Sequence record: OQ473814.1
DNA length: 12,735 bases
Strand: one strand, 5' to 3'
Shown: piece by piece, positions 1 through 12,735 of the stretch
How positions within the stretch are numbered: position 1 is the stretch's first letter
How the letters are laid out: each line of letters starts with the position of its first letter
Program-made: the position numbers and the translations under genes
The notes under the pieces: generated by a model
What the model was told of the DNA's origin: nothing
The model's database searches: none
The model's input: only the letters and a program-made list of their open reading frames with translations

Positions 1-78
1 GCGTCTCGCGGCAGCGTCTCGCGGCAGCGTCTCGCGGCAGCGTCTCGCGGCAGCGTCTCGCGTCGGCGTCTCGCGAGG
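1..78 (+). repeat. Terminal tandem array of the 13-bp unit GCGTCTCGCGGCA
   Basis: Perfect units at 1-13, 14-26, 27-39 and 40-52; variants GCGTCTCGCGTCG (53-65) and GCGTCTCGCGAGG (66-78); CGAGG x3 at 74-88. Confidence 0.97.
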
Positions 79-201
79 CGAGGCGAGGCGTGAGGGTCGC
101 GAAGGGCAGCGCGTGGCATGGCGGACGCCCGCGGTCGCGGAGAGCCACGTGAGCGGAGCGTGGTCGAGGGGCGTAGGAGAGGAGGGCGTAGGAGAGAAGC
201 C
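1..201 (+). repeat. Left inverted terminal repeat (162-bp core 40-201 plus three extra 13-bp units at 1-39)
   Basis: 40-201 is the exact reverse complement of 12574-12735 (checked base by base); identity breaks at 202/12573. Confidence 0.98.
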
Positions 202-211
202 GGAGAGAAGC

Positions 212-271
212 GGACGGGTTAAGGGCGTTAGACCCGCCCCCCGCCTTAGGACGGAGTAGGGCGTTAGACCC
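212..271 (+). repeat. Subterminal direct repeat GGACGG-N3/4-AGGGCGTTAGACCC x2
   Basis: AGGGCGTTAGACCC is exact at 222-235 and 258-271, each preceded by GGACGG (212-217, 249-254). Confidence 0.85.
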
Positions 272-360
272 ATATCCCTAGGGGGGCAACTACCATGTCA
301 GACCCACGCAGACCCCGATCAGAATGAGCGTTGCCCCCCACATAAGGGTCGTGGCGGGGC

Positions 361-450
361 TTAAATAGGTTCGCCCCCGCGGTCGCGGTCTTCGCGGTAT
401 AGAAGGTCAAAGGGGATGCCGTGGTCCTTGAGGAGTTCGGGGAGGTTCAT
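361..450 (-). CDS. Small hypothetical protein, 29 aa (MNLPELLKDHGIPFDLLYREDRDRGGEPI), not in the ORF track
   Basis: ATG (450-448) overlaps the TGA of ORF 447-779 as ATGA; GAGGCG SD-like motif upstream; ends TAA at 363-361. Confidence 0.5.
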   Translation of the reverse strand: MNLPELLKDHGIPFDLLYREDRDRGGEPI

Positions 451-779
451 GTTGTCGCCTCTAGTCTCTTGAGACATTCACTGTACGGCAGAAATTTCGT
501 AGCCTCTTGGCATATGATGGGATAGAGTTCACGCGGTGGCGGTGAATTGTCTAGGTAGTCGGCAGCCGCGTCAATTAACTCTACGCAGAGTTTCTTGATG
601 CGGTCGTTATTGACGGACTTGAGGGTTACGATCGCGGACAGAACTAGGGATCTACCGTTAGCCCGTGATCTCCTACGGATATAGTTCGTTAGGCTAGTGG
701 ACAGGAGGTTCACGTAGACTTGATCCATGCCCTCTACGGGGATAGCCTCTAACTTAATTAGGAGGTCGCGGAGGGTCAT
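447..779 (-). CDS. Hypothetical alpha-helical protein, 110 aa; probable paralog of 12228-12572
   Basis: ATG coupled to the upstream stop (TAATG); VNLLSTSLTNYIR matches VNMLLNSLRLYLR of the right-terminal ORF. Confidence 0.85.
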   Translation of the reverse strand: MTLRDLLIKLEAIPVEGMDQVYVNLLSTSLTNYIRRRSRANGRSLVLSAIVTLKSVNNDRIKKLCVELIDAAADYLDNSPPPRELYPIICQEATKFLPYSECLKRLEATT

Positions 780-1486
780 TATTCATCACCCTTATTCAAT
801 TGGGATAGGTATTCTTGATAGTAGTAATGACCACGGCTTACTATCGTAAGTGCATGCTTACTGAACTTCCTATTGACTAGTTCGCCGGTATCCTCAATCA
901 AGATTAAGGCTTCGTAAGGCGTAACGCTATTGACTATACCGGTCCTTTCTTGATGCCCGTGCCATATCTTTACCGTGTCGCCCATGCATAGGACGTTAAA
1001 CCATACAAATTTGGCACAGTGCGTTGATATCATATCAAAGTACATCGAGGGGTCTCCGCGTTGTCCCGTTATGGGTTGTGGACCTCTAGTGATGTCTCTA
1101 GGCTTAGCCCTAGCCTTCTCAATCTCCGCCTCAAGTCTAGGCTTAACCGCGGGTATCATAATGTCCTCTTCTACGTCTATCTCTTCCTCTTCCTCTTTGC
1201 CCTGTAGGATATTGTAGGCGTACTGGACTAGTTTAGGGTCTACCTCGTACTCCTCAAGTATCCTAGAGAAGTCGGCGTATTCTTTGGCGTGTTCTCCCAT
1301 CATGTCAAAAATCTTAGGGAGAAGAATGTTGAGGTCCTTAACCCCGCTTAACTTAGATAGGTTGCGGGTATATCCCTCAACTTGTTTCTTTGCCTTCGGA
1401 TCACTTATTAACCCGATCAGGTCGTTATATGACTTGATCGGGGTCTTTTTTGGGGGTGAATCCCCCGCGTTTTGTGGGTTGTGCAT
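779..1486 (-). CDS. Hypothetical protein, 235 aa: helical N-domain, acidic linker, C-terminal SH3/KOW-like beta-barrel
   Basis: Long ORF with TTATAA 27-32 nt upstream; C-terminal GDTVKIWHG...TGIVNSV...ALILIEDTG pattern resembles KOW/SH3 barrels. Confidence 0.85.
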   Translation of the reverse strand: MHNPQNAGDSPPKKTPIKSYNDLIGLISDPKAKKQVEGYTRNLSKLSGVKDLNILLPKIFDMMGEHAKEYADFSRILEEYEVDPKLVQYAYNILQGKEEEEEIDVEEDIMIPAVKPRLEAEIEKARAKPRDITRGPQPITGQRGDPSMYFDMISTHCAKFVWFNVLCMGDTVKIWHGHQERTGIVNSVTPYEALILIEDTGELVNRKFSKHALTIVSRGHYYYQEYLSQLNKGDE

Positions 1487-1512
1487 TGTAGCCGATAATT
1501 CTTATTCGCCCC

Positions 1513-1518
1513 TTATAA
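1513..1518 (-). promoter_or_regulatory. TATA box for a probably leaderless leftward transcript (1486 -> 361)
   Basis: TTATAA lies 27-32 nt upstream of the ATG at 1486, the usual crenarchaeal leaderless spacing. Confidence 0.7.
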
Positions 1519-1655
1519 GTTGGCGTCGATAGGTACGATACTCGAACCTTATCTTGGCTAAGTGAATATAACGTGATTATCGGCAACTGAATATTTGGCA
1601 AATGCCGATATTATGAGGGTAAGCGTGAGAGGGTAGGTTAGGAGTTATAGGCAAG

Positions 1656-1665
1656 TATATATAAA
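1656..1665 (+). promoter_or_regulatory. TATA box (TATATATAAA) for the rightward early transcript
   Basis: Strongest AT-only element in the divergent intergenic region, preceded by purine-rich AGGCAAG (BRE-like) and ending 32 nt before ATG 1697. Confidence 0.7.
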
Positions 1666-1696
1666 GGGCGAGTGGGTAGGTAGGGATAGACCCAAA

Positions 1697-2080
1697 ATGT
1701 CAAATCCGAACCAAACCCAAAATCCGGGATTTGACGGGCTGGAGGCTTTTTTGGGGGAGAACGTAAGGACAACTATCTCCCTTTCGCCTAGTCAATCCCT
1801 TCTCGTGGTAGTCTTGAGCTACAAAGGTAAGAGGCAGTATAAGGGGAAGAACGGGGACTACGAGAAACTTGAGTTTGAGGTTAAGGTAGTCTCCGATAAC
1901 CTTAACGTGTACACGGGACTAGAGGGATCCCTTCTACTGAGTACCGCTCTGTACCCGCAAATTAGGAGGGCATTAACCAACAAGGAGACGTGCTGGAAGG
2001 TAACAAGGGGGAGAATAACGGAGTTGAGTAGTTTCCCCGCGGAGTTCTGTGCTAGCAAACTAGGAGGCGGGCAGGCATAA
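1697..2080 (+). CDS. Hypothetical protein, 127 aa; possible OB-fold ssDNA-binding protein
   Basis: First gene after the promoter; beta-rich pattern with a basic/aromatic hairpin (YKGKRQYKGKNGDYEKLEFEVKV), then a helix and WKVTR strand. CDS is secure; the fold call is tentative. Confidence 0.8.
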   Translation: MSNPNQTQNPGFDGLEAFLGENVRTTISLSPSQSLLVVVLSYKGKRQYKGKNGDYEKLEFEVKVVSDNLNVYTGLEGSLLLSTALYPQIRRALTNKETCWKVTRGRITELSSFPAEFCASKLGGGQA

Positions 2081-2091
2081 ACATCAACCAA

Positions 2092-2316
2092 ATGCAATTG
2101 CCCGAACAAGTTAAGGTCCACGCGTTCATGGATGATGACACGGAGATTACCATGGTAGTGGAAAGGTCCGATCTCCTAGAGTACGTGGAAGGGTTACGCG
2201 AGTTCTTAGTGGGGAAGGGATACAAGACTTCCACGTTTAAGGCAATCTCTAGGACCCATACCGTCTATATGACTTGGGACGCGGAGGGGTCTAACAGTGA
2301 GGATAGAGACGCTTAA
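2092..2316 (+). CDS. Hypothetical protein, 74 aa
   Basis: ATG 11 nt after the previous stop; fits the operon tiling. Confidence 0.8.
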   Translation: MQLPEQVKVHAFMDDDTEITMVVERSDLLEYVEGLREFLVGKGYKTSTFKAISRTHTVYMTWDAEGSNSEDRDA

Positions 2317-2479
2317 GGGGATAGTTAAGGAAGGTACCCGCGTTAAGGTAACTACGAACAACCACAGTTACGAGGGTACCATCTCCTACATGGATGACGC
2401 GGTTATCGTGAATACGGCGGACGGCAAAGTAGTCATAGTAGCCTCGGCGGTTAAGGAATTGACGGTATTGGGGGAGTAA
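2297..2479 (+). CDS. Sm/LSm/Hfq-like small beta-barrel protein, 60 aa
   Basis: GTG start with GGAGGGGT SD at 2283-2290; helix then [23 protein letters not shown]...[14 protein letters not shown] follows the Sm1/Sm2 pattern. CDS is likely; the fold is moderately supported. Confidence 0.7.
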   Translation: [60 protein letters not shown]

Positions 2480-2480
2480 C

Positions 2481-2657
2481 ATGACCCTTATCGTAATCAC
2501 GTTTAAGATAGACCGCGATACTCTAGACGTTTTGGACTCAGTGGCGGGGTCCCTCAAAATGAACAGGTCCGAGTTCATTAGGAGGGCGATAAGCCACGAG
2601 ATAGCGAGTTACGTGAATAAGGACGCAAAGGCTAGAGTTGAGAGGGTTAAGCTATGA
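2481..2657 (+). CDS. Ribbon-helix-helix (CopG/Arc/MetJ-like) DNA-binding protein, 58 aa; not in the ORF track
   Basis: MTLIVITFKIDRDTLDVLDSVAGSLKMNRSEFIRRAISHEIASYVNKDAKARVERVKL: ITFKID strand, helix, NRSEFIRRAI helix; GGGGAG SD; fills the gap exactly with an ATGA overlap at 2654-2657. Confidence 0.92.
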   Translation: MTLIVITFKIDRDTLDVLDSVAGSLKMNRSEFIRRAISHEIASYVNKDAKARVERVKL

Positions 2658-3061
2658 TCGACCTACCTATTCTTTCAATCGGACACTTTAAGGACGGCAG
2701 GACGGGGATGGAATTCAAGGGGATCATGATCTACAGTACTCAGACTTTCGTTATCGTAAAGGACCTAGACCATGAGAAATACTACTTGATCGAGCAGGAA
2801 AACGGCGGTGCCATGGATATCACGGAGGAGTGGACAAGTTACGTGAAAGAGCATGAGGACTTTGATAAAGCCGTAGACCTCACTATTTGGTTCATCAAGA
2901 AAAGCGTGCAGGCAGGGACGCCCGTAAATCCCTTAATCCCGCCTATGTTCGTGAACCAGATTGAGCCCGATATCGCGGAGATATTGAGGATCGTGCTAGC
3001 GAAACTTGAGAAAATGGTAGGGGAGGAGGAGGAAAATGCCGACACTCCTAGAGGAAACTGA
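2654..3061 (+). CDS. Hypothetical protein, 135 aa; probable paralog of 3036-3344
   Basis: ATGA-coupled to the RHH gene; YYLIEQENGGAMDITEEW motif resembles one in the next ORF. Confidence 0.85.
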   Translation: MIDLPILSIGHFKDGRTGMEFKGIMIYSTQTFVIVKDLDHEKYYLIEQENGGAMDITEEWTSYVKEHEDFDKAVDLTIWFIKKSVQAGTPVNPLIPPMFVNQIEPDIAEILRIVLAKLEKMVGEEEENADTPRGN

Positions 3062-3344
3062 CGGTAAGATTTATGTGTGGATAGATCCCGAACTCGTTAT
3101 CTACACTACGGACCGCGGGATCTACTTACAAACCGCGGACGGTAGAACCGTGGACGTAACCCACGCGTGGCAAAGGATTATGAGGAGTAACCCCGGCGAT
3201 TCAATCAAGATTTACTTGATCATGAACGCGGTCTACCTACGCAGAAAGTTCTACCATAAACCCGTGGATAGCCTAATTGAGGAATACGCGGAGTTAATCC
3301 GCCCTTACGTAGAACGACTAGTGAGGGAGGCCCTACGAGGATAG
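3036..3344 (+). CDS. Hypothetical protein, 102 aa; probable paralog of 2654-3061
   Basis: GGAGGAGG SD upstream of the ATG; motif IYLQTADGRTVDVTHAW. Confidence 0.85.
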   Translation: MPTLLEETDGKIYVWIDPELVIYTTDRGIYLQTADGRTVDVTHAWQRIMRSNPGDSIKIYLIMNAVYLRRKFYHKPVDSLIEEYAELIRPYVERLVREALRG

Positions 3345-3364
3345 ACCTATCCGATTGCTTTGAT

Positions 3365-3949
3365 ATGCCTAGGCTCACGAGTTTGGGCTTTAGGATAACT
3401 ACGCGGAGATGGACCATAGAGGACCTTAGCAAGATTGAGCAGTGTATGGGTGTGATTGAGAATTCCACGGAATTCCAAAGGTGCCTAGGTAGGAGGAGGA
3501 CGGACGTATTGGCGATCCGCAGGTATATCCTAGCTGTCCGTAACAAGGAAGCCCCGGCTATTCTCGTGGTACCGCCCGTTATTTCGGTGGAAGGGGTTCA
3601 ATCCGAACAGGGGGAGGAGGGGGGAGAAACGTGCAGTTCGATCGATGAGGGTGAACCCCTATGTGTATACGGGTGGTTTAACCCGGATTGCGTAGCGGAG
3701 GCAGTTACGGGTGCGTCTATGGACTACGCTACTGAACAAGCGGGGGATGAGGGTAGGATCAGGGTCAAATACGGGACGGGCGTAGAAGAACGCCCTTGTG
3801 ATAACCCGCAAATAGGTCCTATCGTAGATATCGAGTACCACGGGACTACAGTGTGCAGTGGCGAGGGATCCCTAGAGGAGTTAATGGAAGAGGCGTTACA
3901 ACACATAGATGAATACTTTGCGGAGATGGGGGAGGACTTCAATGAGTAG
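3365..3949 (+). CDS. Hypothetical protein, 194 aa: basic N-terminal Myb/SANT-like HTH candidate and acidic Cys-containing C-domain
   Basis: RRWTIEDLSKI...LGRRRTDVLAIRRYIL resembles the WT.E...LG.R...R Myb-type pattern; overlaps the next gene by 8 nt. Confidence 0.8.
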   Translation: MPRLTSLGFRITTRRWTIEDLSKIEQCMGVIENSTEFQRCLGRRRTDVLAIRRYILAVRNKEAPAILVVPPVISVEGVQSEQGEEGGETCSSIDEGEPLCVYGWFNPDCVAEAVTGASMDYATEQAGDEGRIRVKYGTGVEERPCDNPQIGPIVDIEYHGTTVCSGEGSLEELMEEALQHIDEYFAEMGEDFNE

Positions 3950-4313
3950 TTGGAGGGTACCCATAGACCCGGTTCACCCCTACGTAACGCTAGACTGGGA
4001 CGTGCGTTATGACACGCGACACTCTACCCTTAAGTGGCGGTCCATGGTAGCGTTTTTGACGGGGGCGGGGATTCACGAGGTCATGACAAGGCACAGTGCG
4101 GGCGGAAACACTCACGTGATCATTAAGTGGACCTACGACCTCACGTTTTGGGAGAGGCTAGTTATACGTTCAATTCTACAGGATGATCCCTACCGTATTA
4201 GTGCCGATATTAGACGTTACTACCGCGGTCTACCGGTTGAACGTTTATTCGGGATTAAGGCGACCCCGGGCGTTTTACGTAAAGCCGGACCGTGGACAAG
4301 AGAAACTTTTTAG
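3942..4313 (+). CDS. Minimal archaeo-eukaryotic primase (AEP)-like protein, 123 aa
   Basis: Start moved to ATG 3942 (GGAGGA SD at 3931-3936). Motif I VTLDWD (D18, D20), motif II RHSAGGNTHVII (S52, H58) and a motif III candidate QDDPYR (D81/D82) occur in AEP order. Confidence 0.7.
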   Translation: MSSWRVPIDPVHPYVTLDWDVRYDTRHSTLKWRSMVAFLTGAGIHEVMTRHSAGGNTHVIIKWTYDLTFWERLVIRSILQDDPYRISADIRRYYRGLPVERLFGIKATPGVLRKAGPWTRETF

Positions 4314-4335
4314 CCCGTTTATCGAGTAGCCGTTT

Positions 4336-4773
4336 ATGAGCGAACCAAATTCTCAAGGGCAAACGGAGGGGTCTAACCCCGCGGAAAAGCCTAAATCTAC
4401 CCCGCCTTCTAAGGTGGAATGTAGAATTTGCGGTAAGAAAGTGAACCCCGCGGGTCTACCACGCCACGAGTGGAGTCATATACCCGACATATACGACAAA
4501 ATGAAAGAGTTAGAGAACAAAATCGCGGAGTTAAAGGCAGTTCAAACTCAACCCGCCCCGGCAGTACCCTCAACTAGTACTCAACCTAACCCCGGGGCCG
4601 CCCCGGCGACCGTGAAAGTTAAGGACGTTAAGCCGTTATTGGACACCGTGCTAGAGCATGTAAAGAGTTGTCCGGAGTGCCGTAGGGAGTTAGGGGAGTG
4701 GCTAACTCAGAATACGAAACAATTCGCTGAGTGGTTCGTACCGGAGGACCAAAGAAAGAGGCTTAGGCTATGA
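4336..4773 (+). CDS. Zinc-finger protein, 145 aa: C2H2 finger, coiled coil, Pro-rich linker, HxxxCxxC motif
   Basis: C29-x2-C32-x11-H44-x3-H48; heptad DKMKELENKIAELKA; H108-x3-C112-x2-C115. Confidence 0.88.
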   Translation: MSEPNSQGQTEGSNPAEKPKSTPPSKVECRICGKKVNPAGLPRHEWSHIPDIYDKMKELENKIAELKAVQTQPAPAVPSTSTQPNPGAAPATVKVKDVKPLLDTVLEHVKSCPECRRELGEWLTQNTKQFAEWFVPEDQRKRLRL

Positions 4774-5264
4774 AAATTGAGATTGATCACGATAACGCGG
4801 ACAATAACCCCGCGGAGGGGGAGGAGGTTGAGGTAGTTGAGGAGGTAACTAAGACTGAACCTACGCCCGCGACTCCTCAACCTCAACCCGTAACTCCTCA
4901 ACCCGCCCCCGTGGATCCCCGCGTGGATCAACTTGAGAGTAGGATAGCTCAACTAGAGAATTCCTTTACTCAACTTACGGACGCCCTTAACAAGTACTTT
5001 AATGCTCAAGGGCAGGGGCAGGTACCTCAAGGACAAGGGCAGGGAGGGATGGAATGGTTAGGTCCCGTAGCTCAACTCCTAGGTAGTCTCTTTCAATCCC
5101 GCGGTGGTAGTGATCAACTGACTAGCGTGTTGTTAGGGCTAGCGATCGATAACCTAAAATCTAGTGCAGAATTGAACAGGGCGGTGGCGGGGGCGGTAGT
5201 AAAGAAACTTTTAGGCGAGGCTATCGCTAGTGAACTAGGAGAGGTGGTTGTAAGTCATGAGTAA
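4770..5264 (+). CDS. Acidic/Pro-rich coiled-coil protein with amphipathic C-terminal helices, 164 aa (possible scaffold or assembly factor)
   Basis: ATGA overlap; E/P-rich N-terminus, VDQLESRIAQLENS heptads, QG-rich linker, WLGPVAQLLGSLF helix. Confidence 0.85.
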   Translation: MKIEIDHDNADNNPAEGEEVEVVEEVTKTEPTPATPQPQPVTPQPAPVDPRVDQLESRIAQLENSFTQLTDALNKYFNAQGQGQVPQGQGQGGMEWLGPVAQLLGSLFQSRGGSDQLTSVLLGLAIDNLKSSAELNRAVAGAVVKKLLGEAIASELGEVVVSHE

Positions 5265-5448
5265 CGTAAGTAAGAAAGTGGATGAAATAACGAGAAAGAT
5301 GCAAGTCTACGAGTTCGTTAAGAGCCTCGCCCTAACACTAGGTATCCCCTTCCCGGACGCTATGGTTAAGGCGTACATAATGAGAACCGACATCAACAAG
5401 ATTAATGCGATCATAGAGAAGACTAGGGAGTGGATTAAGCATGTCTGA
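5257..5448 (+). CDS. Small helical hypothetical protein, 63 aa
   Basis: 8-nt overlaps with both neighbours. Confidence 0.8.
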   Translation: MSNVSKKVDEITRKMQVYEFVKSLALTLGIPFPDAMVKAYIMRTDINKINAIIEKTREWIKHV

Positions 5449-5764
5449 CGTAGACGTGAAATACGTTATCGACCACGAACTTGAGGAGGACCTTAAGTTT
5501 CGCGTACTTGTTGAGGAGTACCGCAGAAAGTTCATAGCGGAAATAAGGGAGGAGTGTCCGGACCTTACCCCGCAGTGTTGGGGACCTCAAGTTTGGGCTA
5601 GATTTCACGCTCTAGCCCTCGCAGTACCATGTCCGGCGTGCAGTAGTGAGGCTCAAGCATTCCTTAGTTTCTTCCACGATTACGTGAACAAACACCGCGG
5701 TAAGCCGTTATACGCCCCCGTAAACTACGAGAATGTCAAAAAGGAAATATGCCGTAATGCGTAA
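5441..5764 (+). CDS. Miniature Erv1/Alr-family (FAD-dependent) sulfhydryl oxidase, 107 aa
   Basis: All family hallmarks in order: WGPxxWxxFH (47-56), PCxxC (CPAC 64-67; nt 5630-5641), HDxVN (79-83, the HNxVN motif), GKP (87-89). Confidence 0.85.
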   Translation: MSDVDVKYVIDHELEEDLKFRVLVEEYRRKFIAEIREECPDLTPQCWGPQVWARFHALALAVPCPACSSEAQAFLSFFHDYVNKHRGKPLYAPVNYENVKKEICRNA

Positions 5765-5766
5765 TC

Positions 5767-5772
5767 TTTTTT
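5767..5772 (+). terminator. Oligo-T terminator after the 4336-5764 operon
   Basis: T6 starting 3 nt after TAA. Confidence 0.65.
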
Positions 5773-5804
5773 ACTTTCCCGCGTCAATCTTTACGTGAAC
5801 GACC

Positions 5805-6089
5805 ATGAAAGCAAAAAATCCAATCGCGTCTCAACTCAGTTCAGCCGTAAGGGATGCATGGGAAAGCCCTGAAGGTATGTCAATGAGGGAAAGAATGAGT
5901 GCACAGGCTTACGATTCCAACTTTGCGAATTGTCTAAGATCCGGAGCTAGGAGGAATGAGGCTTTTGCGGACGTGGTAAAGAGGTGCATGGCACAGACCG
6001 GGTACAATATCGACCTCGCTCAAGATTGGGGCTCTCCTAAGGAAAACGCTCCTAGGGTACAGGTACTGTCAGCTAGGGCAAGACTCTAG
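5805..6089 (+). CDS. Helical, mildly basic protein, 94 aa; candidate virion core/nucleoprotein
   Basis: First gene of the 3-gene block ending in the capsid-like gene; Arg/Lys-rich; two Cys. The function is inferred. Confidence 0.8.
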   Translation: MKAKNPIASQLSSAVRDAWESPEGMSMRERMSAQAYDSNFANCLRSGARRNEAFADVVKRCMAQTGYNIDLAQDWGSPKENAPRVQVLSARARL

Positions 6090-6095
6090 AGGTGG
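6089..6095 (+). promoter_or_regulatory. Shine-Dalgarno GAGGTGG for 6101
   Basis: Archaeal consensus SD, 5 nt before the ATG. Confidence 0.8.
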
Positions 6096-6100
6096 ACTAA

Positions 6101-6481
6101 ATGGACATTAAACAAGGACTAGGACCCGCCCTTGTGGGTGCGGGGGGTTACCTAGCGGGCGTAAATACCATCAAGAACTACATACAGCAATTAGGGAGTA
6201 AGATAAATTCCAATAACCCTACGCAGGGCGTTAAGATCATAGGACTTATCACTGTACTCGCGGGTGCAGGTATCAAGATAGCCATGGACTCCGCAATCGG
6301 GGACGGACTAGGGTATTTCTTGGCAGGACTCGGGGCAGGATTCCTTGCGGACCCCGTGCCAACACCGGCTCAGAATACCGCAGTAGCTAACGCAGTGCCA
6401 AAGCAAAACGTTACGGCTCAACCGGTCCCCGTAAAGGTACCGGCGACCGTAATGAATAATAGTACCCCCCAATACATCTAG
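6101..6481 (+). CDS. Virion membrane protein candidate, 126 aa (Gly/Ala-rich hydrophobic helices, Pro-rich tail)
   Basis: Hydrophobic GxxxG-rich segments (IIGLITVLAGAGIKIAM, LGYFLAGLGAGFLA); strong SD; directly upstream of the capsid gene. Confidence 0.85.
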   Translation: MDIKQGLGPALVGAGGYLAGVNTIKNYIQQLGSKINSNNPTQGVKIIGLITVLAGAGIKIAMDSAIGDGLGYFLAGLGAGFLADPVPTPAQNTAVANAVPKQNVTAQPVPVKVPATVMNNSTPQYI

Positions 6482-6487
6482 AGGTGA
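6481..6487 (+). promoter_or_regulatory. Shine-Dalgarno GAGGTGA for the capsid gene
   Basis: Perfect archaeal SD 5 nt before ATG 6493; the track's GTG start at 6484 lies inside this SD. Confidence 0.85.
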
Positions 6488-6492
6488 TTAAG

Positions 6493-6909
6493 ATGCCCAA
6501 AACCTATTACAGGACGTACCAGATTCAATTTAACGTAGGAGCTTCCCTACCCGCGAATTCCATAATCGCCGGGACTTTCGTAAATCTCGCGAACGGTAAG
6601 ACTGAGTCACAACTACAGGCTCCGTCAAACCAGACGTGGGATATCGTGGACATCTATATCAGGTCTACTAGCGACGATCCCCTAGACGCGACCGTAACAT
6701 TCACTAGGGACGACGTGAATAACCTGATAACGACCGATCCACTCAGTGCCCTAGTGGTAAGCAACCCATCAAGACCTAGGTACCCCGCTATCCGTCTCAA
6801 CCCCGGACAAAGACTTAGTGCGACCGCGACAACCCTCGCGACTAACGGGACCTCCGCCGTAACCGACTACGTGTTTGTAAAGGTGCAGGTAACCGACTAC
6901 TCCGCTTAA
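6493..6909 (+). CDS. Probable major capsid protein, single jelly-roll-like, 138 aa
   Basis: Best SD in the genome and T7 terminator just after; all-beta alternating pattern (TYQIQF, WDIVDIYI, ATVTFT, IRLNPGQRLSAT, YVFVKVQV); no TM helix. Confidence 0.7.
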   Translation: MPKTYYRTYQIQFNVGASLPANSIIAGTFVNLANGKTESQLQAPSNQTWDIVDIYIRSTSDDPLDATVTFTRDDVNNLITTDPLSALVVSNPSRPRYPAIRLNPGQRLSATATTLATNGTSAVTDYVFVKVQVTDYSA

Positions 6910-6918
6910 ACCAAACCC

Positions 6919-6925
6919 TTTTTTT
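6919..6925 (+). terminator. Oligo-T terminator after the capsid gene
   Basis: T7 10 nt after TAA within a long pyrimidine tract (6916-6947). Confidence 0.75.
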
Positions 6926-6954
6926 ATCCCCTTCCCCTTTCTATCTTGATAGTC

Positions 6955-7668
6955 ATGTCAAGTACCGGCGTGTTATGTCAAAAGGTAAGTAACATATCCC
7001 TAGGACCGCTATCGCTAGAGAACGCGGAGTTATGCTTTACGCAGACAGGTGAATACACGGGCAATATGAACGTAAAGGTATACTTCCTAGGCTATGACGT
7101 TATTAACGACAATTTCCCCGTAGCCCTCACGGTACCATGGTATCAGGCTAGTTCTCAAACTCAAGTTGCGGTACAGTTTGGTAATCCTATTACGGAGGAC
7201 GTAGTTACTCTCCTACTCAATATAGGGCAGGACATAAACGAGTTAGCTACCGCCCTAGGATACTCCGGTGTTCTTTCAATTACGGACGCCCATATAGACG
7301 CTAACGGCGATCTAGTCTTTACGGTGAACGCGACCTCTCCCCCCGTGATCATAATCCTCGCGATCATATTCGTGATCGCCCTAGCTATCCTAGTTTACAT
7401 AGGCGGACAAAGTGCCAGTGCCGTGATCACGTCAATTAACGGAGTTCAACCATCTCCGCCCAATTGTGCTAACTTAACCCAACAGGAATGTGCCCAACAG
7501 TACCAACTCTACTATCAGGCTTATCAGCAGTACTCTACGAACAAGGGTATCTCTAGCGTAGGCGTCTCCGTGTCCGGGATAGCGATCGCTCTAGGGATAG
7601 GTGCGGTCCTAATAGGCGGTATCGTACTAGCCAATAGGAGATCAAGACAAAGCGGTGTACCCACATGA
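6955..7668 (+). CDS. Virion membrane protein candidate, 237 aa: beta-rich N-domain, two TM helices, two Cys pairs
   Basis: ATG 6955 preferred over TTG 6946; TM1 VIIILAIIFVIALAILVYIGG, TM2 IAIALGIGAVLIGGIVLA followed by RRSR. Confidence 0.85.
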   Translation: MSSTGVLCQKVSNISLGPLSLENAELCFTQTGEYTGNMNVKVYFLGYDVINDNFPVALTVPWYQASSQTQVAVQFGNPITEDVVTLLLNIGQDINELATALGYSGVLSITDAHIDANGDLVFTVNATSPPVIIILAIIFVIALAILVYIGGQSASAVITSINGVQPSPPNCANLTQQECAQQYQLYYQAYQQYSTNKGISSVGVSVSGIAIALGIGAVLIGGIVLANRRSRQSGVPT

Positions 7669-7964
7669 CCGTACAACTCCTAACTAATGCGATCCAAACA
7701 ATTCACCAAAACGTGCAGAATGCCCCTAGGTATGACGTCAATATCAACGGTACCCTACACATAGTAGTAGCTCCGCAAAGTTCTGTGGTACTAACCCTAT
7801 GGTTAAACGGAATACCCGCAGTACTAAATCAAGGCAATAGTTTGTCAGGCGGGGCATGGTATGACTTTGACGGCATAGAGGTCCTACAGGGAGATGAAAT
7901 ACAAATTACGGGTAACGTGGACACGCAGGGATTTTTGCGAATGTATGTGAAAAGCGTATTTTAG
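7665..7964 (+). CDS. Small beta-sandwich (jelly-roll-like) minor structural protein, 99 aa
   Basis: ATGA overlap; all-beta pattern with LNQGNSLSGGAWYDFDGIEVLQGDEIQI. Confidence 0.8.
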   Translation: MTVQLLTNAIQTIHQNVQNAPRYDVNINGTLHIVVAPQSSVVLTLWLNGIPAVLNQGNSLSGGAWYDFDGIEVLQGDEIQITGNVDTQGFLRMYVKSVF

Positions 7965-8006
7965 GGGTGGTCCACTACGGATATAGTTACGGTAAGTGTT
8001 TTGACC

Positions 8007-8234
8007 ATGGAAAACGTGGTTACGTGGGTTTTACTTGCCCGAGTAAATGCGGGACTCGGGAAGGCTATCGAGCAGTGGACCCGTGCCCTAGATCACCTTA
8101 AGCAAAGTAACGAGGCTCTAGAGCGTGCTAGTCAGGAATTAGCTCAAGGTAATCAAGAGCTTAAGGAAGTTAAGGACCAACTAAGCATAATAGCCCAATT
8201 GCTCAAGTCATTAAGCGGAGGGTATCCCACATGA
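8007..8234 (+). CDS. Coiled-coil protein, 75 aa
   Basis: ATG 8007 (TTG 8001 alternative); long heptad run LDHLKQSNEALERASQELAQGNQELKEVKDQL. Confidence 0.8.
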   Translation: MENVVTWVLLARVNAGLGKAIEQWTRALDHLKQSNEALERASQELAQGNQELKEVKDQLSIIAQLLKSLSGGYPT

Positions 8235-8494
8235 GCGTAAATATCTCTGACGGGCTCTATAACTCGGGCGGTAACACCATGACCCCTACGCAATTTCTGA
8301 GTTCTCTAAATCAGGGGGGTAGTTCATGCCCCAATTGTCAATCCACTACGCAGTCTACCACGCAGTCTAGCGGTCAATCCATGCCCTCAACGATTAACGT
8401 ATCCATAAGGGGATATAACTTTGTGGACGTTATCATTATCGGGGCTCTAGTGTCCCTTACGGCGATAGCGAGTTACTACCTAGCCAAAAGTTAG
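8231..8494 (+). CDS. Tail-anchored small membrane protein with CPNC motif, 87 aa
   Basis: ATGA overlap; CPNC, QSTT/QSS repeats, C-terminal TM VDVIIIGALVSLTAIASYYLAK. Confidence 0.82.
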   Translation: MSVNISDGLYNSGGNTMTPTQFLSSLNQGGSSCPNCQSTTQSTTQSSGQSMPSTINVSIRGYNFVDVIIIGALVSLTAIASYYLAKS

Positions 8495-8496
8495 GG

Positions 8497-8502
8497 TTTT
8501 TT
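8497..8502 (+). terminator. Oligo-T terminator (second T6 at 8516-8521)
   Basis: T6 starting 3 nt after TAG 8494. Confidence 0.6.
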
Positions 8503-8533
8503 ATCTCGATTACGCTTTTTTCCATGAGACAGT

Positions 8534-9571
8534 ATGTTACGACCTACGATTGTAAAGGAAAGGGGTGTAATCTCTAGATATATCACGTCAATAGAGCCGG
8601 TTCTAACTACGTGGATGCATGACGCCGGTAGGGATGAACTCCCTAGCCTTATGAGATTAGCGGGTCTAGGTAGAAGACACGGTAAACTGTGGAGAGCTAG
8701 CCTACAGGGTAACGTAGGTCCCTTTACTAGGGACATAGAGATGCTTATCTTCCCGCCATTCTTGTTATCCACGGGACCTAGCGGACCCGTAACCGTGACC
8801 TATCCCCTTAACGGATCCTCGCCTATCTCCGCCACGACTTTCCTCCTAGATATTATCGCGGGCGGTGGTGCCGGTGGCGGGGGCGGTGGCGGTGGATCCT
8901 CCGCCCCCGGACAAGGTGGCGGTGGTGGTGCCGACGGCGGTAGGCTAGTGGTTAAGTTCAGTGGCGGTGCGATCGACACAGGTACAGTAACGGTACCCGG
9001 ACCTAGTGCCGGTGGTGCCGGTGGTTCAGGTGGTGCAGGATCTAACGGACAAAACGGCGGAAACACTACCGTTTCCTTAAACTCCGCGACCGCGACACTA
9101 CAGTCTCAGGGACTCCCCGCGTTTACCATGCCCGCCCCTGTAGGCGGACAATACGCCGGTGGGCAGGGTGGTGCGGGCGGTAACGCCGTACTACAATACG
9201 ATAAGAGCATCTCTCCCTCATTCTTCCTAGAGCTAGGCGGACTTAATCAAGGGGCTTACGCAAATAACTCGCAGATACTTAGCGACTCAGTAGGTACAGG
9301 GGGTTACGGAGTAAACTCGGAGTATCTCAACTTCTCAGGTAGAGGTCTATGGACTAGATCAACCGCGGGTGTAAGCGGTGGTGCAAATACGGGTTCAGGT
9401 ACCGCAGGTTCAGGTGGTGCTAACGCCTACGTAAACGTGCCCTCCGGGTCTATCTACGGTAGAGGTGCCGGTGCGGGCGGTGGCGGTGGCGGTTCAGGTA
9501 GCACGCCCGGGGCAGGTGGTCCCGGTGGACAAGGCGGTCCCGGACTTGTAATAATGCTAGTGGTGGCGTAA
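8534..9571 (+). CDS. Glycine-rich (polyglycine II bundle type) adhesin/spike candidate, 345 aa (alternative start ATG 8741, 276 aa)
   Basis: LLDIIAGGGAGGGG...GGGGADGG...GQNGGNTTV...GAGGPGGQGGPGLVIMLV matches the layout of Gly-rich domains of phage tail adhesins and ALK/LTK. Confidence 0.85.
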   Translation: MLRPTIVKERGVISRYITSIEPVLTTWMHDAGRDELPSLMRLAGLGRRHGKLWRASLQGNVGPFTRDIEMLIFPPFLLSTGPSGPVTVTYPLNGSSPISATTFLLDIIAGGGAGGGGGGGGSSAPGQGGGGGADGGRLVVKFSGGAIDTGTVTVPGPSAGGAGGSGGAGSNGQNGGNTTVSLNSATATLQSQGLPAFTMPAPVGGQYAGGQGGAGGNAVLQYDKSISPSFFLELGGLNQGAYANNSQILSDSVGTGGYGVNSEYLNFSGRGLWTRSTAGVSGGANTGSGTAGSGGANAYVNVPSGSIYGRGAGAGGGGGGSGSTPGAGGPGGQGGPGLVIMLVVA

Positions 9572-12573: not shown

Positions 12574-12735
12574 GGCTTCTCTCCTACGCCCTCCTCTCCT
12601 ACGCCCCTCGACCACGCTCCGCTCACGTGGCTCTCCGCGACCGCGGGCGTCCGCCATGCCACGCGCTGCCCTTCGCGACCCTCACGCCTCGCCTCGCCTC
12701 GCGAGACGCCGACGCGAGACGCTGCCGCGAGACGC
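12574..12735 (-). repeat. Right inverted terminal repeat (162 bp)
   Basis: Exact reverse complement of 40-201; carries one perfect 13-bp unit plus the two variant units. Confidence 0.98.

Follow-up and report, generated by a model that had tools for sequence, protein, structure and literature searches.

A proposed three-gene core-membrane-capsid cassette in Metallosphaera turreted icosahedral virus 3 with homology to the virion module of Sulfolobus polyhedral virus 1

How is the genome enclosed in an icosahedral virus that carries an internal lipid layer and in which no packaging ATPase is recognised? This question is raised by three consecutive genes (positions 5805-6909) of MTIV3 (Metallosphaera turreted icosahedral virus 3), whose whole published genome (OQ473814; linear, 12,735 bp) is, with a 100% match, the window that was analysed. 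A reading of the sequence without database searches (hereafter the sequence-only reading) had proposed that these genes, open reading frames (ORFs) 19, 20 and 21, form a core-membrane-capsid cassette of the kind found in Portogloboviridae, here applied to a linear genome capped by repeats. The evidence given below makes it rather probable that MTIV3 builds the core of its virion with this cassette as a module, that it was inherited from an ancestor shared with Sulfolobus polyhedral virus 1 (SPV1), and that it works by co-assembly without a packaging motor. The genes and the signals between them, with lengths in nucleotides (nt) and amino acids (aa), are the following.

5765-5804, plus strand: intergenic region upstream of ORF19, with a tract of six T (T6) at 5767-5772, 33-38 nt before the ATG
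5805-6089, plus strand: ORF19 (GenBank MTIV3_ORF19), 94 aa, basic and helical
6089-6095, plus strand: Shine-Dalgarno site GAGGTGG, 5 nt before the ATG of ORF20
6101-6481, plus strand: ORF20 (GenBank MTIV3_ORF20), 126 aa, Gly-rich and hydrophobic
6481-6487, plus strand: Shine-Dalgarno site GAGGTGA, 5 nt before the ATG of ORF21
6493-6909, plus strand: ORF21 (GenBank MTIV3_ORF21), 138 aa from the ATG at 6493, all-beta
6910-6954, plus strand: intergenic region after ORF21, with a tract of seven T (T7) at 6919-6925

The identity of the capsid protein was approached through both sequence and predicted structure. When ORF21 alone was compared with all PDB sequences using phmmer, the sole match was VP4 of SPV1 (6OJ0, E-value 5e-3), and with a profile of six ORF21 homologues the same protein was still the sole match, now at an E-value of 1.5e-7. 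The family profile also identified VP4 when run on the SPV1 genome (E 2.4e-10), and the VP4-type family model PF25646 (SPV1_VP4) was touched by all six members of the ORF21 family, with a best E-value of 5.2e-7, so that membership in this family is indicated at the level of the family profile. The SPV1 genome used here was a 20,222-bp IMG/VR contig, which was reached by a short degenerate DNA pattern derived from VP4 residues; tblastn with MTIV-type capsid proteins did not reach SPV1, and a scan of IMG/VR with the capsid alignment returned zero relatives. The sequence core common to ORF21 and VP4 is TT(D)P..S....SNP.R, at ORF21 residues 80-94.

The AlphaFold2 model of ORF21 (predicted local distance difference test score, pLDDT, of 87) is an all-beta, single jelly roll of eight to ten strands. 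A Foldseek search with this model placed chain 6oj0_A first (E 2.2e-8, template modelling (TM) score 0.78), with the next matches at E-values of about 1e-2. In the BFVD collection of viral models the best agreement was with A0A221ZTR8 (137 aa, 48% identical, TM 0.96), which is presumably the MTIV protein c137, and SPV1 VP4 followed with a TM score of 0.73; a search of ESM Atlas folds returned only generic jelly-roll domains. The sequence-only reading had described the 138-aa product as all-beta, had named SPV1 VP4 and VP10, beside other single-jelly-roll capsid proteins, for comparison with it, and had made its proposal depend on a jelly-roll fold. The comparison bears this out, in that ORF21 is predicted to be a single jelly roll that superposes on VP4 and VP4 is the only significant match among solved structures.

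A link to virions of the MTIV group itself is also available. ORF21 shares 48% identity with MTIV1 c137, a protein annotated as virion structural, and the MTIV3 isolation paper already related ORF21 to the 'structural protein c137' (PMC10101205); PHROGs holds MTIV c137 in a family of its own with unassigned function. No statement on the capsid fold was found in the MTIV literature examined, where the virus is put forward as founding a family of its own and as having a 'new virion architecture'. Taken together, the sequence matches and the model support ORF21 as a single-jelly-roll major capsid protein homologous to VP4 and c137, which would be the dominant protein of the virion. In MTIV1 hexameric units lie on the icosahedral 2-fold axes (PMC7826561). 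Such a position would fit homo-hexamers of a single-jelly-roll protein rather than trimeric double-jelly-roll capsomers, because a capsomer of true 6-fold symmetry could lie there and a trimeric one could not.

The first gene of the cassette encodes the putative core protein. ORF19 has an isoelectric point (pI) of 9.5, with 14 Lys and Arg against 10 Asp and Glu residues, and five predicted helices, in agreement with its earlier description as a basic helical protein of 94 aa. It matched MTIV1 b88, annotated as virion structural, with 33% identity (tblastn E 6e-5) and the PHROGs family phrog_28831 ('virion structural protein') at an E-value of 5e-9. When the profile of the ORF19 family was run on the SPV1 genome, it matched at one place, the sole ORF of 78 aa (E 1.7e-8), and alignment of the family with this ORF using hhalign gave P 1.5e-7 and a probability of 94%. 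A BFVD entry of the same length (78 aa) names the SPV1 protein 'Nucleocapsid VP1'. The residues W19, C43-L44, C61 and W75-G76 (W..CL..C..WG) are invariant in the ORF19/VP1 alignment, and the pI is about 9.3-9.8 in both the MTIV and the SPV1 groups of VP1 proteins (9.3 for SPV1 VP1); the MTIV VP1-like proteins carry an additional basic C-terminal tail. By sequence homology, ORF19 is thus a homologue of SPV1 VP1 and falls within the VP1 nucleocapsid family. In the SPV1 core VP1 and DNA form a nucleoprotein filament with the DNA in A-form (profile of the ICTV, the international committee for virus taxonomy; PMC8459092).

ORF20 had been called a Gly-rich membrane protein, and its composition is in keeping with this: Gly makes up 13.5% of its residues, hydrophobicity is strong in a single window (residues 42-67), and there are segments that resemble Gly zippers as well as a tail rich in Pro. 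It matched phrog_29020 ('virion structural protein') at an E-value of 1.3e-6 and, at the level of the family alignment, it is a homologue of the MTIV1 virion protein a109; an ESM Atlas feature search gave only scores below 0.9. We propose that ORF20 is an internal-membrane or sub-capsomer protein, with a predicted location in the membrane.

The order of these genes provides a further line of evidence. On the minus strand of SPV1, VP1 (78 aa) is followed by a 119-aa Gly-rich hydrophobic ORF, VP4 (181 aa) and a 304-aa transmembrane protein. In MTIV3, MTIV1 and eight contigs from metagenomes and metagenome-assembled genomes (MAGs) the order is VP1-like protein, Gly-rich membrane protein, capsid protein, a membrane protein of 205-240 aa and a protein of about 100 aa. 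The likeness to SPV1 is one of homology and not of analogy alone, because VP4 and VP1 are both matched, the gene order corresponds and neither genome contains a Walker A motif. The proposal of a portoglobovirus-like core-membrane-capsid module thereby gained homology between ORF19 and VP1 and between ORF21 and VP4, together with the same three-gene order.

The expression signals of the cassette were also compared. The sequence-only reading had placed the three genes between T-tracts and had given them the two best Shine-Dalgarno sites. The coordinates, the T6 and T7 tracts and both sites were recovered, with the refinement that the sites of ORF20 and ORF21, the longest matches among plus-strand genes, are equalled by the GAGGTGG that precedes ORF17. 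No other T run in the MTIV3 genome is as long as the T7 tract at 6919-6925. The start of ORF21 was assigned to the ATG at 6493 because the GTG at 6484 sits within the Shine-Dalgarno site and the homologues all start at the same residue. A Shine-Dalgarno site before the membrane gene has equivalents in MTIV1, in two metagenomic relatives (L004 and L006) and in SPV1, and the site of the capsid gene is identical (GAGGTGA) in L004 and SPV1 and reads GGGGTGA in MTIV1. In all five genomes (MTIV3, MTIV1, L004, L006 and SPV1) a T6-T7 tract follows the capsid-gene stop within 2-22 nt, and the VP1-like ATG has an A/T-rich box 25-40 nt upstream. The layout is therefore considered as conserved rather than due to chance, since the T7 tract and the Shine-Dalgarno sites recur in MTIV1, the two metagenomic relatives and SPV1. 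Region 5765-5804 probably acts as a TATA-like promoter that gives a transcript with a short leader, as a T-rich terminator for the unit upstream, or as both. Region 6910-6954 probably terminates the cassette, provides a TATA-like promoter for ORF22 as the next unit, or does both.

In L004 a 40-nt intergenic module (a T7-8 tract, TTTTTAC and ATGAG) was seen three times, at 1868-1907, 4062-4101 and 6998-7037, with one copy directly after the capsid gene. The module probably unites terminator and promoter in one cassette and marks the borders of transcription units.

Sequence nearly identical to MTIV3 was encountered in 17 public sequencing runs from about eight studies (region 5441-7000; 93-98% of sampled words). 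Some of these runs are labelled soil metagenome, and one is a polyA RNA-seq library labelled seawater metagenome that contains a 7.7-kb contig. This suggests either laboratory or sequencing carry-over, or an occurrence far beyond hot springs.

As regards the packaging motor, the Walker A pattern [AG]xxxxGK[ST] was not found in any of the six frames of MTIV3, and Pfam scans of 30 MTIV3 ORFs returned no P-loop family; the earlier statement that the genome encodes no P-loop protein is upheld by both searches. Among MTIV3 ORFs of at least 60 aa the sole GK[ST] is NGKTE, inside ORF21. Neither Walker A nor GK[ST] was found in SPV1. In 367 ORFs of relatives there was one Walker A match, non-conserved and located at the very C-terminal end of a protein from MTIV1, and the precomputed Pfam matches on the genes of relatives included no ATPase. 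SPV1 has been described as lacking a genome-packaging ATPase and as resembling the ancestral state of Helvetiavirae (PMC8812541). MTIV3 likewise combines an internal lipid layer, in which host-like tetraether lipids were measured in purified virions (PMC10101205), with the lack of a packaging ATPase.

On the basis of these results the following working model is proposed. The cassette would most likely be transcribed as one unit from an A/T-rich promoter near 5767 to the T7 tract at 6919-6925, and strong Shine-Dalgarno sites would direct the translation of its second and third genes. The outer icosahedral shell would be built from VP4-like hexameric capsomers of ORF21. ORF20 would sit in the internal tetraether lipid layer, where its Pro-rich tail may reach the capsomers, and ORF19 would coat the linear double-stranded DNA (dsDNA) to give a nucleoprotein filament condensed into the core. 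Nucleoprotein, membrane and shell would then co-assemble around the genome, with no pumping of DNA into a preformed procapsid. Co-assembly rather than pumping is the probable mode because MTIV3, its relatives and SPV1 are all without a P-loop nucleoside triphosphatase (NTPase). On a lattice of triangulation number T, a hexamer-forming capsid protein is present in 60(T-1) copies. ORF19 and ORF21 would both be needed in many copies, which fits a shared unit with the strongest ribosome-binding sites.

Several observations weigh against parts of this model. The sequence of ORF21 by itself reached 17.3 bits, under the PF25646 cut-off of 27. The middle gene showed no HMMER match to the 119-aa ORF of SPV1, and hhalign gave P 0.064 and 0.059; because this similarity is not significant, its correspondence is one of position and composition, and homology is not claimed. 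The AlphaFold2 model of ORF19 was poor (pLDDT 59) and in a BFVD structure search SPV1 VP1 appeared at rank 18 with a non-significant E-value of 3.9. VP1 has no chain or atomic model in the PDB, and for both reasons, the poor model and the missing reference, the link between ORF19 and VP1 is one of sequence. The net charge of ORF19 is modest (about +4), and its role as a putative DNA-coating and condensing core protein, including DNA binding itself, is proposed by analogy with VP1. A homologue of the SPV1 penton VP10 was not found in MTIV3, neither by searching the ORF22 and ORF23 families against the PDB nor by comparison with the SPV1 genome. The RNA runs that contain MTIV3 sequence hold low-depth contigs, possibly from DNA carry-over, and show no transcript starts, ends or levels.

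The size of the particle also has to be considered here. MTIV3 particles are spherical, 50-55 nm in diameter by negative stain, with vertex complexes (PMC10101205). With assumed thicknesses of shell and membrane this diameter leaves a core radius of about 13.5-16 nm, and by rough packing arithmetic naked DNA of 12.7 kb would need about 18.7 nm. The particle size reported for MTIV4, 37.6 nm, leaves a far smaller core than that of MTIV3, into which the genome does not fit under ordinary assumptions. Either the reported size or the packing assumptions are off, for which reason the packing of the core cannot be judged from these figures; the published negative-stain sizes of MTIV3 and MTIV4 are probably underestimates from shrunken particles.

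These points lend themselves to a different interpretation, in which ORF19, and perhaps VP1 too, is a matrix, scaffold or membrane-proximal protein and the genome is naked or bound by host chromatin proteins, perhaps with help from terminal proteins or a host ATPase. The low-confidence fold and the modest positive charge of ORF19 agree with such a role, as do the lack of a recognised DNA-binding domain in this protein and, by the rough arithmetic given above, the small size of the MTIV3 and MTIV4 particles, which suit a thick protein-coated filament poorly. However, ORF19 is significantly homologous to a protein that the ICTV names as the nucleocapsid protein of SPV1, and VP1 is equally modest in charge (pI 9.3). 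The MTIV family moreover has the basic C-terminal tail, and in every relative the gene lies together with the capsid gene and is apparently expressed along with it. We therefore regard a role for ORF19 other than condensing DNA as unlikely, though it is the alternative to which we give the most weight.

Motor-driven packaging, as in turriviruses and sphaerolipoviruses, would require a packaging NTPase that is too divergent to be recognised or that is borrowed from the host, and a host-encoded packaging ATPase is possible. Some room for such an enzyme is left because no function could be detected for the majority of MTIV3 ORFs and because a missing motif counts as negative evidence. That room is narrow, however: GK[ST] in the MTIV3 ORFs of at least 60 aa is restricted to the capsid protein, it does not occur in SPV1, and the one match in relatives is a non-conserved chance match. 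Only four ORFs reach 200 aa. They include ORF22, with two transmembrane regions, the Gly-rich ORF26, and ORF27, which is encoded by a repeat-rich gene and has a C-terminal hydrophobic segment. Since the related SPV1 is also described without a packaging ATPase, a hidden or borrowed motor appears improbable. Convergence of ORF21 and VP4 on the jelly-roll fold, with a gene order that agrees by coincidence, was already disfavoured by the sequence matches at both VP4 and VP1 and is held to be extremely improbable. An inherited module that co-assembles around its genome is hence the reading that was retained.

The relationship of MTIV3 to established virus groups can be considered on this basis. 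The likeness to SPV1 comprises the VP1 and VP4 homologues, the gene order, the Shine-Dalgarno site of the capsid gene, the T7 tract, the internal lipid, the absence of a P-loop ATPase and a host from the Sulfolobales. The two viruses differ in that the SPV1 genome is circular and of 20.2 kb, whereas that of MTIV3 is linear and of 12.7 kb with 162-nt inverted terminal repeats. The repeat is perfect (40-201 and 12574-12735) and the tips carry 13-nt tandem repeats, which substantiates the earlier description of a linear, repeat-capped genome. The SPV1 shell has T=43; its VP4 (181 aa) has N- and C-terminal extensions and loop insertions without counterpart in the 138-aa ORF21, and its VP1 (78 aa) lacks the basic C-terminal tail of ORF19. 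Detectable homology between MTIV3 and SPV1 is limited to three genes. MTIV3 does not have the circular genome of about 20 kbp that defines Portogloboviridae, and of the two capsid proteins of this family (VP4 and VP10) it has the VP4 homologue, with the beta-sandwich protein ORF23 as a candidate for the second. MTIV3 is therefore not a member of Portogloboviridae as the ICTV defines the family, since the circular genome of about 20 kb and VP10 are both required; the T=43 shell is that of the type species.

The closest relatives are MTIV1 and MTIV2, whose b88, a109 and c137 are direct orthologues in the same order, annotated as virion structural, in linear genomes with inverted terminal repeats. 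Their genomes are smaller (9.8-9.9 kb and 21 ORFs, compared with 12.7 kb and 33 ORFs in MTIV3, which has extra terminal genes). BLASTp matches were reported for only seven of the 33 MTIV3 ORFs, six of them to MTIV1/2 (PMC10101205), and all 33 products are labelled hypothetical in GenBank. With Turriviridae, MTIV3 shares the turreted icosahedral look and the corresponding name, an internal membrane and a host from the Sulfolobales. In Sulfolobus turreted icosahedral virus (STIV) the capsid protein is a double jelly roll and the packaging ATPase is of the FtsK/HerA type, similar to A32 (see PMC8812541). No double-jelly-roll chain was among the top matches of ORF21 and no P-loop protein was detected, and without these two components MTIV3 is not a turrivirus despite its name. 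The Helvetiavirae (P23-77, SH1, HCIV-1 and HHIV-2) have two single-jelly-roll capsid proteins and an FtsK/HerA ATPase; two paralogous capsid genes together with such an ATPase were not found in MTIV3. We conclude that MTIV3 is a distinct, smaller relative with a linear genome and the portoglobovirus virion module. No link between MTIV and portogloboviruses was found in the full-text literature searched; several key papers on MTIV and SPV1 lie outside that search, and the link may have been noticed earlier.

Some of the related sequences are of interest in themselves. L003 (OQ473816.1, 'Sulfolobus polyhedral virus 3' / STIV3, 18,040 bp) looks like two joined MTIV-like genomes of about 9 kb, of which positions 1-8864 resemble L006 (91-97% identity, permuted) and positions 9011-17971 resemble L004 (88-98%), and each half has its own VP1-like, membrane and capsid cassette. 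L006 (8,837 bp) and L007 (8,794 bp) are contigs in Metallosphaera MAGs that look like complete or near-complete linear MTIV-like genomes; the ends of L006 are 112-nt inverted terminal repeats, and in L007 the inverted repeat measures 55 nt (1-55 and 8597-8651).

The genes on both sides of the cassette were examined for further virion components.

5257-5448: ORF17, 63 aa, small and basic (pI 9.6), with its own GAGGTGG Shine-Dalgarno site
5441-5764, plus strand: ORF18, 107 aa, with five Cys and a CxxC motif (PCPAC)
6955-7964, plus strand: ORF22 and ORF23, conserved in every MTIV-like genome, where they follow the capsid gene directly

Besides ORF19 and ORF21, ORF17 too has a significant homologue in SPV1, namely the ORF at 1300-1497 elsewhere in that genome (phmmer E 1.7e-6, hhalign P 1.2e-7). 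ORF18, directly upstream of the cassette in all relatives, had no Pfam match and matched phrog_32547, a 'virion structural protein' of MTIV1, at an E-value of 5.4e-17; sequence profiles thus lend no support to an Erv1/Alr-like function for it. The TTG start annotated for ORF22 (6946-7668) is doubtful and the ATG at 6955 is probably the start; the T7/TATA-like tract precedes this ATG by about 30 nt, which fits a leaderless start. The ORF22 protein has a beta-rich N-terminal part besides its two predicted transmembrane regions, and its family matched the 304-aa SPV1 gene directly downstream of VP4 weakly (hhalign P 0.0026). ORF23 (7665-7964, 99 aa) has an ESM Atlas model with a predicted TM score (pTM) of 0.86 whose neighbours are beta-sandwiches of the BclA_C/TNF-like type, and shows no similarity to ORF21. 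ORF22 and ORF23 are candidates for vertex, penton or turret components, and ORF23 is possibly a cement protein. Elsewhere in the genome ORF10 (2481-2657) encodes a ribbon-helix-helix protein (PF01402, E 4e-8), and ORF26 (8534-9571) a Gly-rich homologue of a virion structural protein (phrog_30830, E 3e-33) that scored 24.1 bits with Pfam Gly_rich_2, just under the cut-off of 24.3.

A lineage of single-jelly-roll viruses without a packaging ATPase has been placed near the root of Helvetiavirae (Krupovic et al., PMC8812541). A wider reading, which we consider evenly balanced when taken as a whole, is that the MTIV-like viruses and the portogloboviruses together make up a single ancient lineage of icosahedral dsDNA viruses that contain a membrane and have a single-jelly-roll capsid gene, a VP1-type coat of the genome and no motor. 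Such a lineage would have explored circular as well as linear genomes and lattices of T=43 and T=28. Its MTIV-like members (9-14 kb, with capsid proteins of 137-138 aa) would be the smallest known representatives of the 'pre-ATPase' state proposed as ancestral to Helvetiavirae, and they would provide a second case of protein-wrapped, possibly A-form, DNA in an icosahedral shell.

With this finding the three genes that look best expressed in the whole MTIV group receive putative functions, and a connection is made between two groups of Sulfolobales viruses that had been orphans, a point of relevance for how they are classified. The sole known lineage in which dsDNA viruses with single-jelly-roll capsids do without a packaging ATPase is also broadened. 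Because one virion design would serve both circular genomes and linear, repeat-capped ones, the enclosure of the genome would be independent of its topology. ORF21 would represent a very small (138-aa), hyperthermostable building block of the capsid, and the culturable viruses MTIV3 and MTIV4 may serve as a system for genome encapsidation without a motor.

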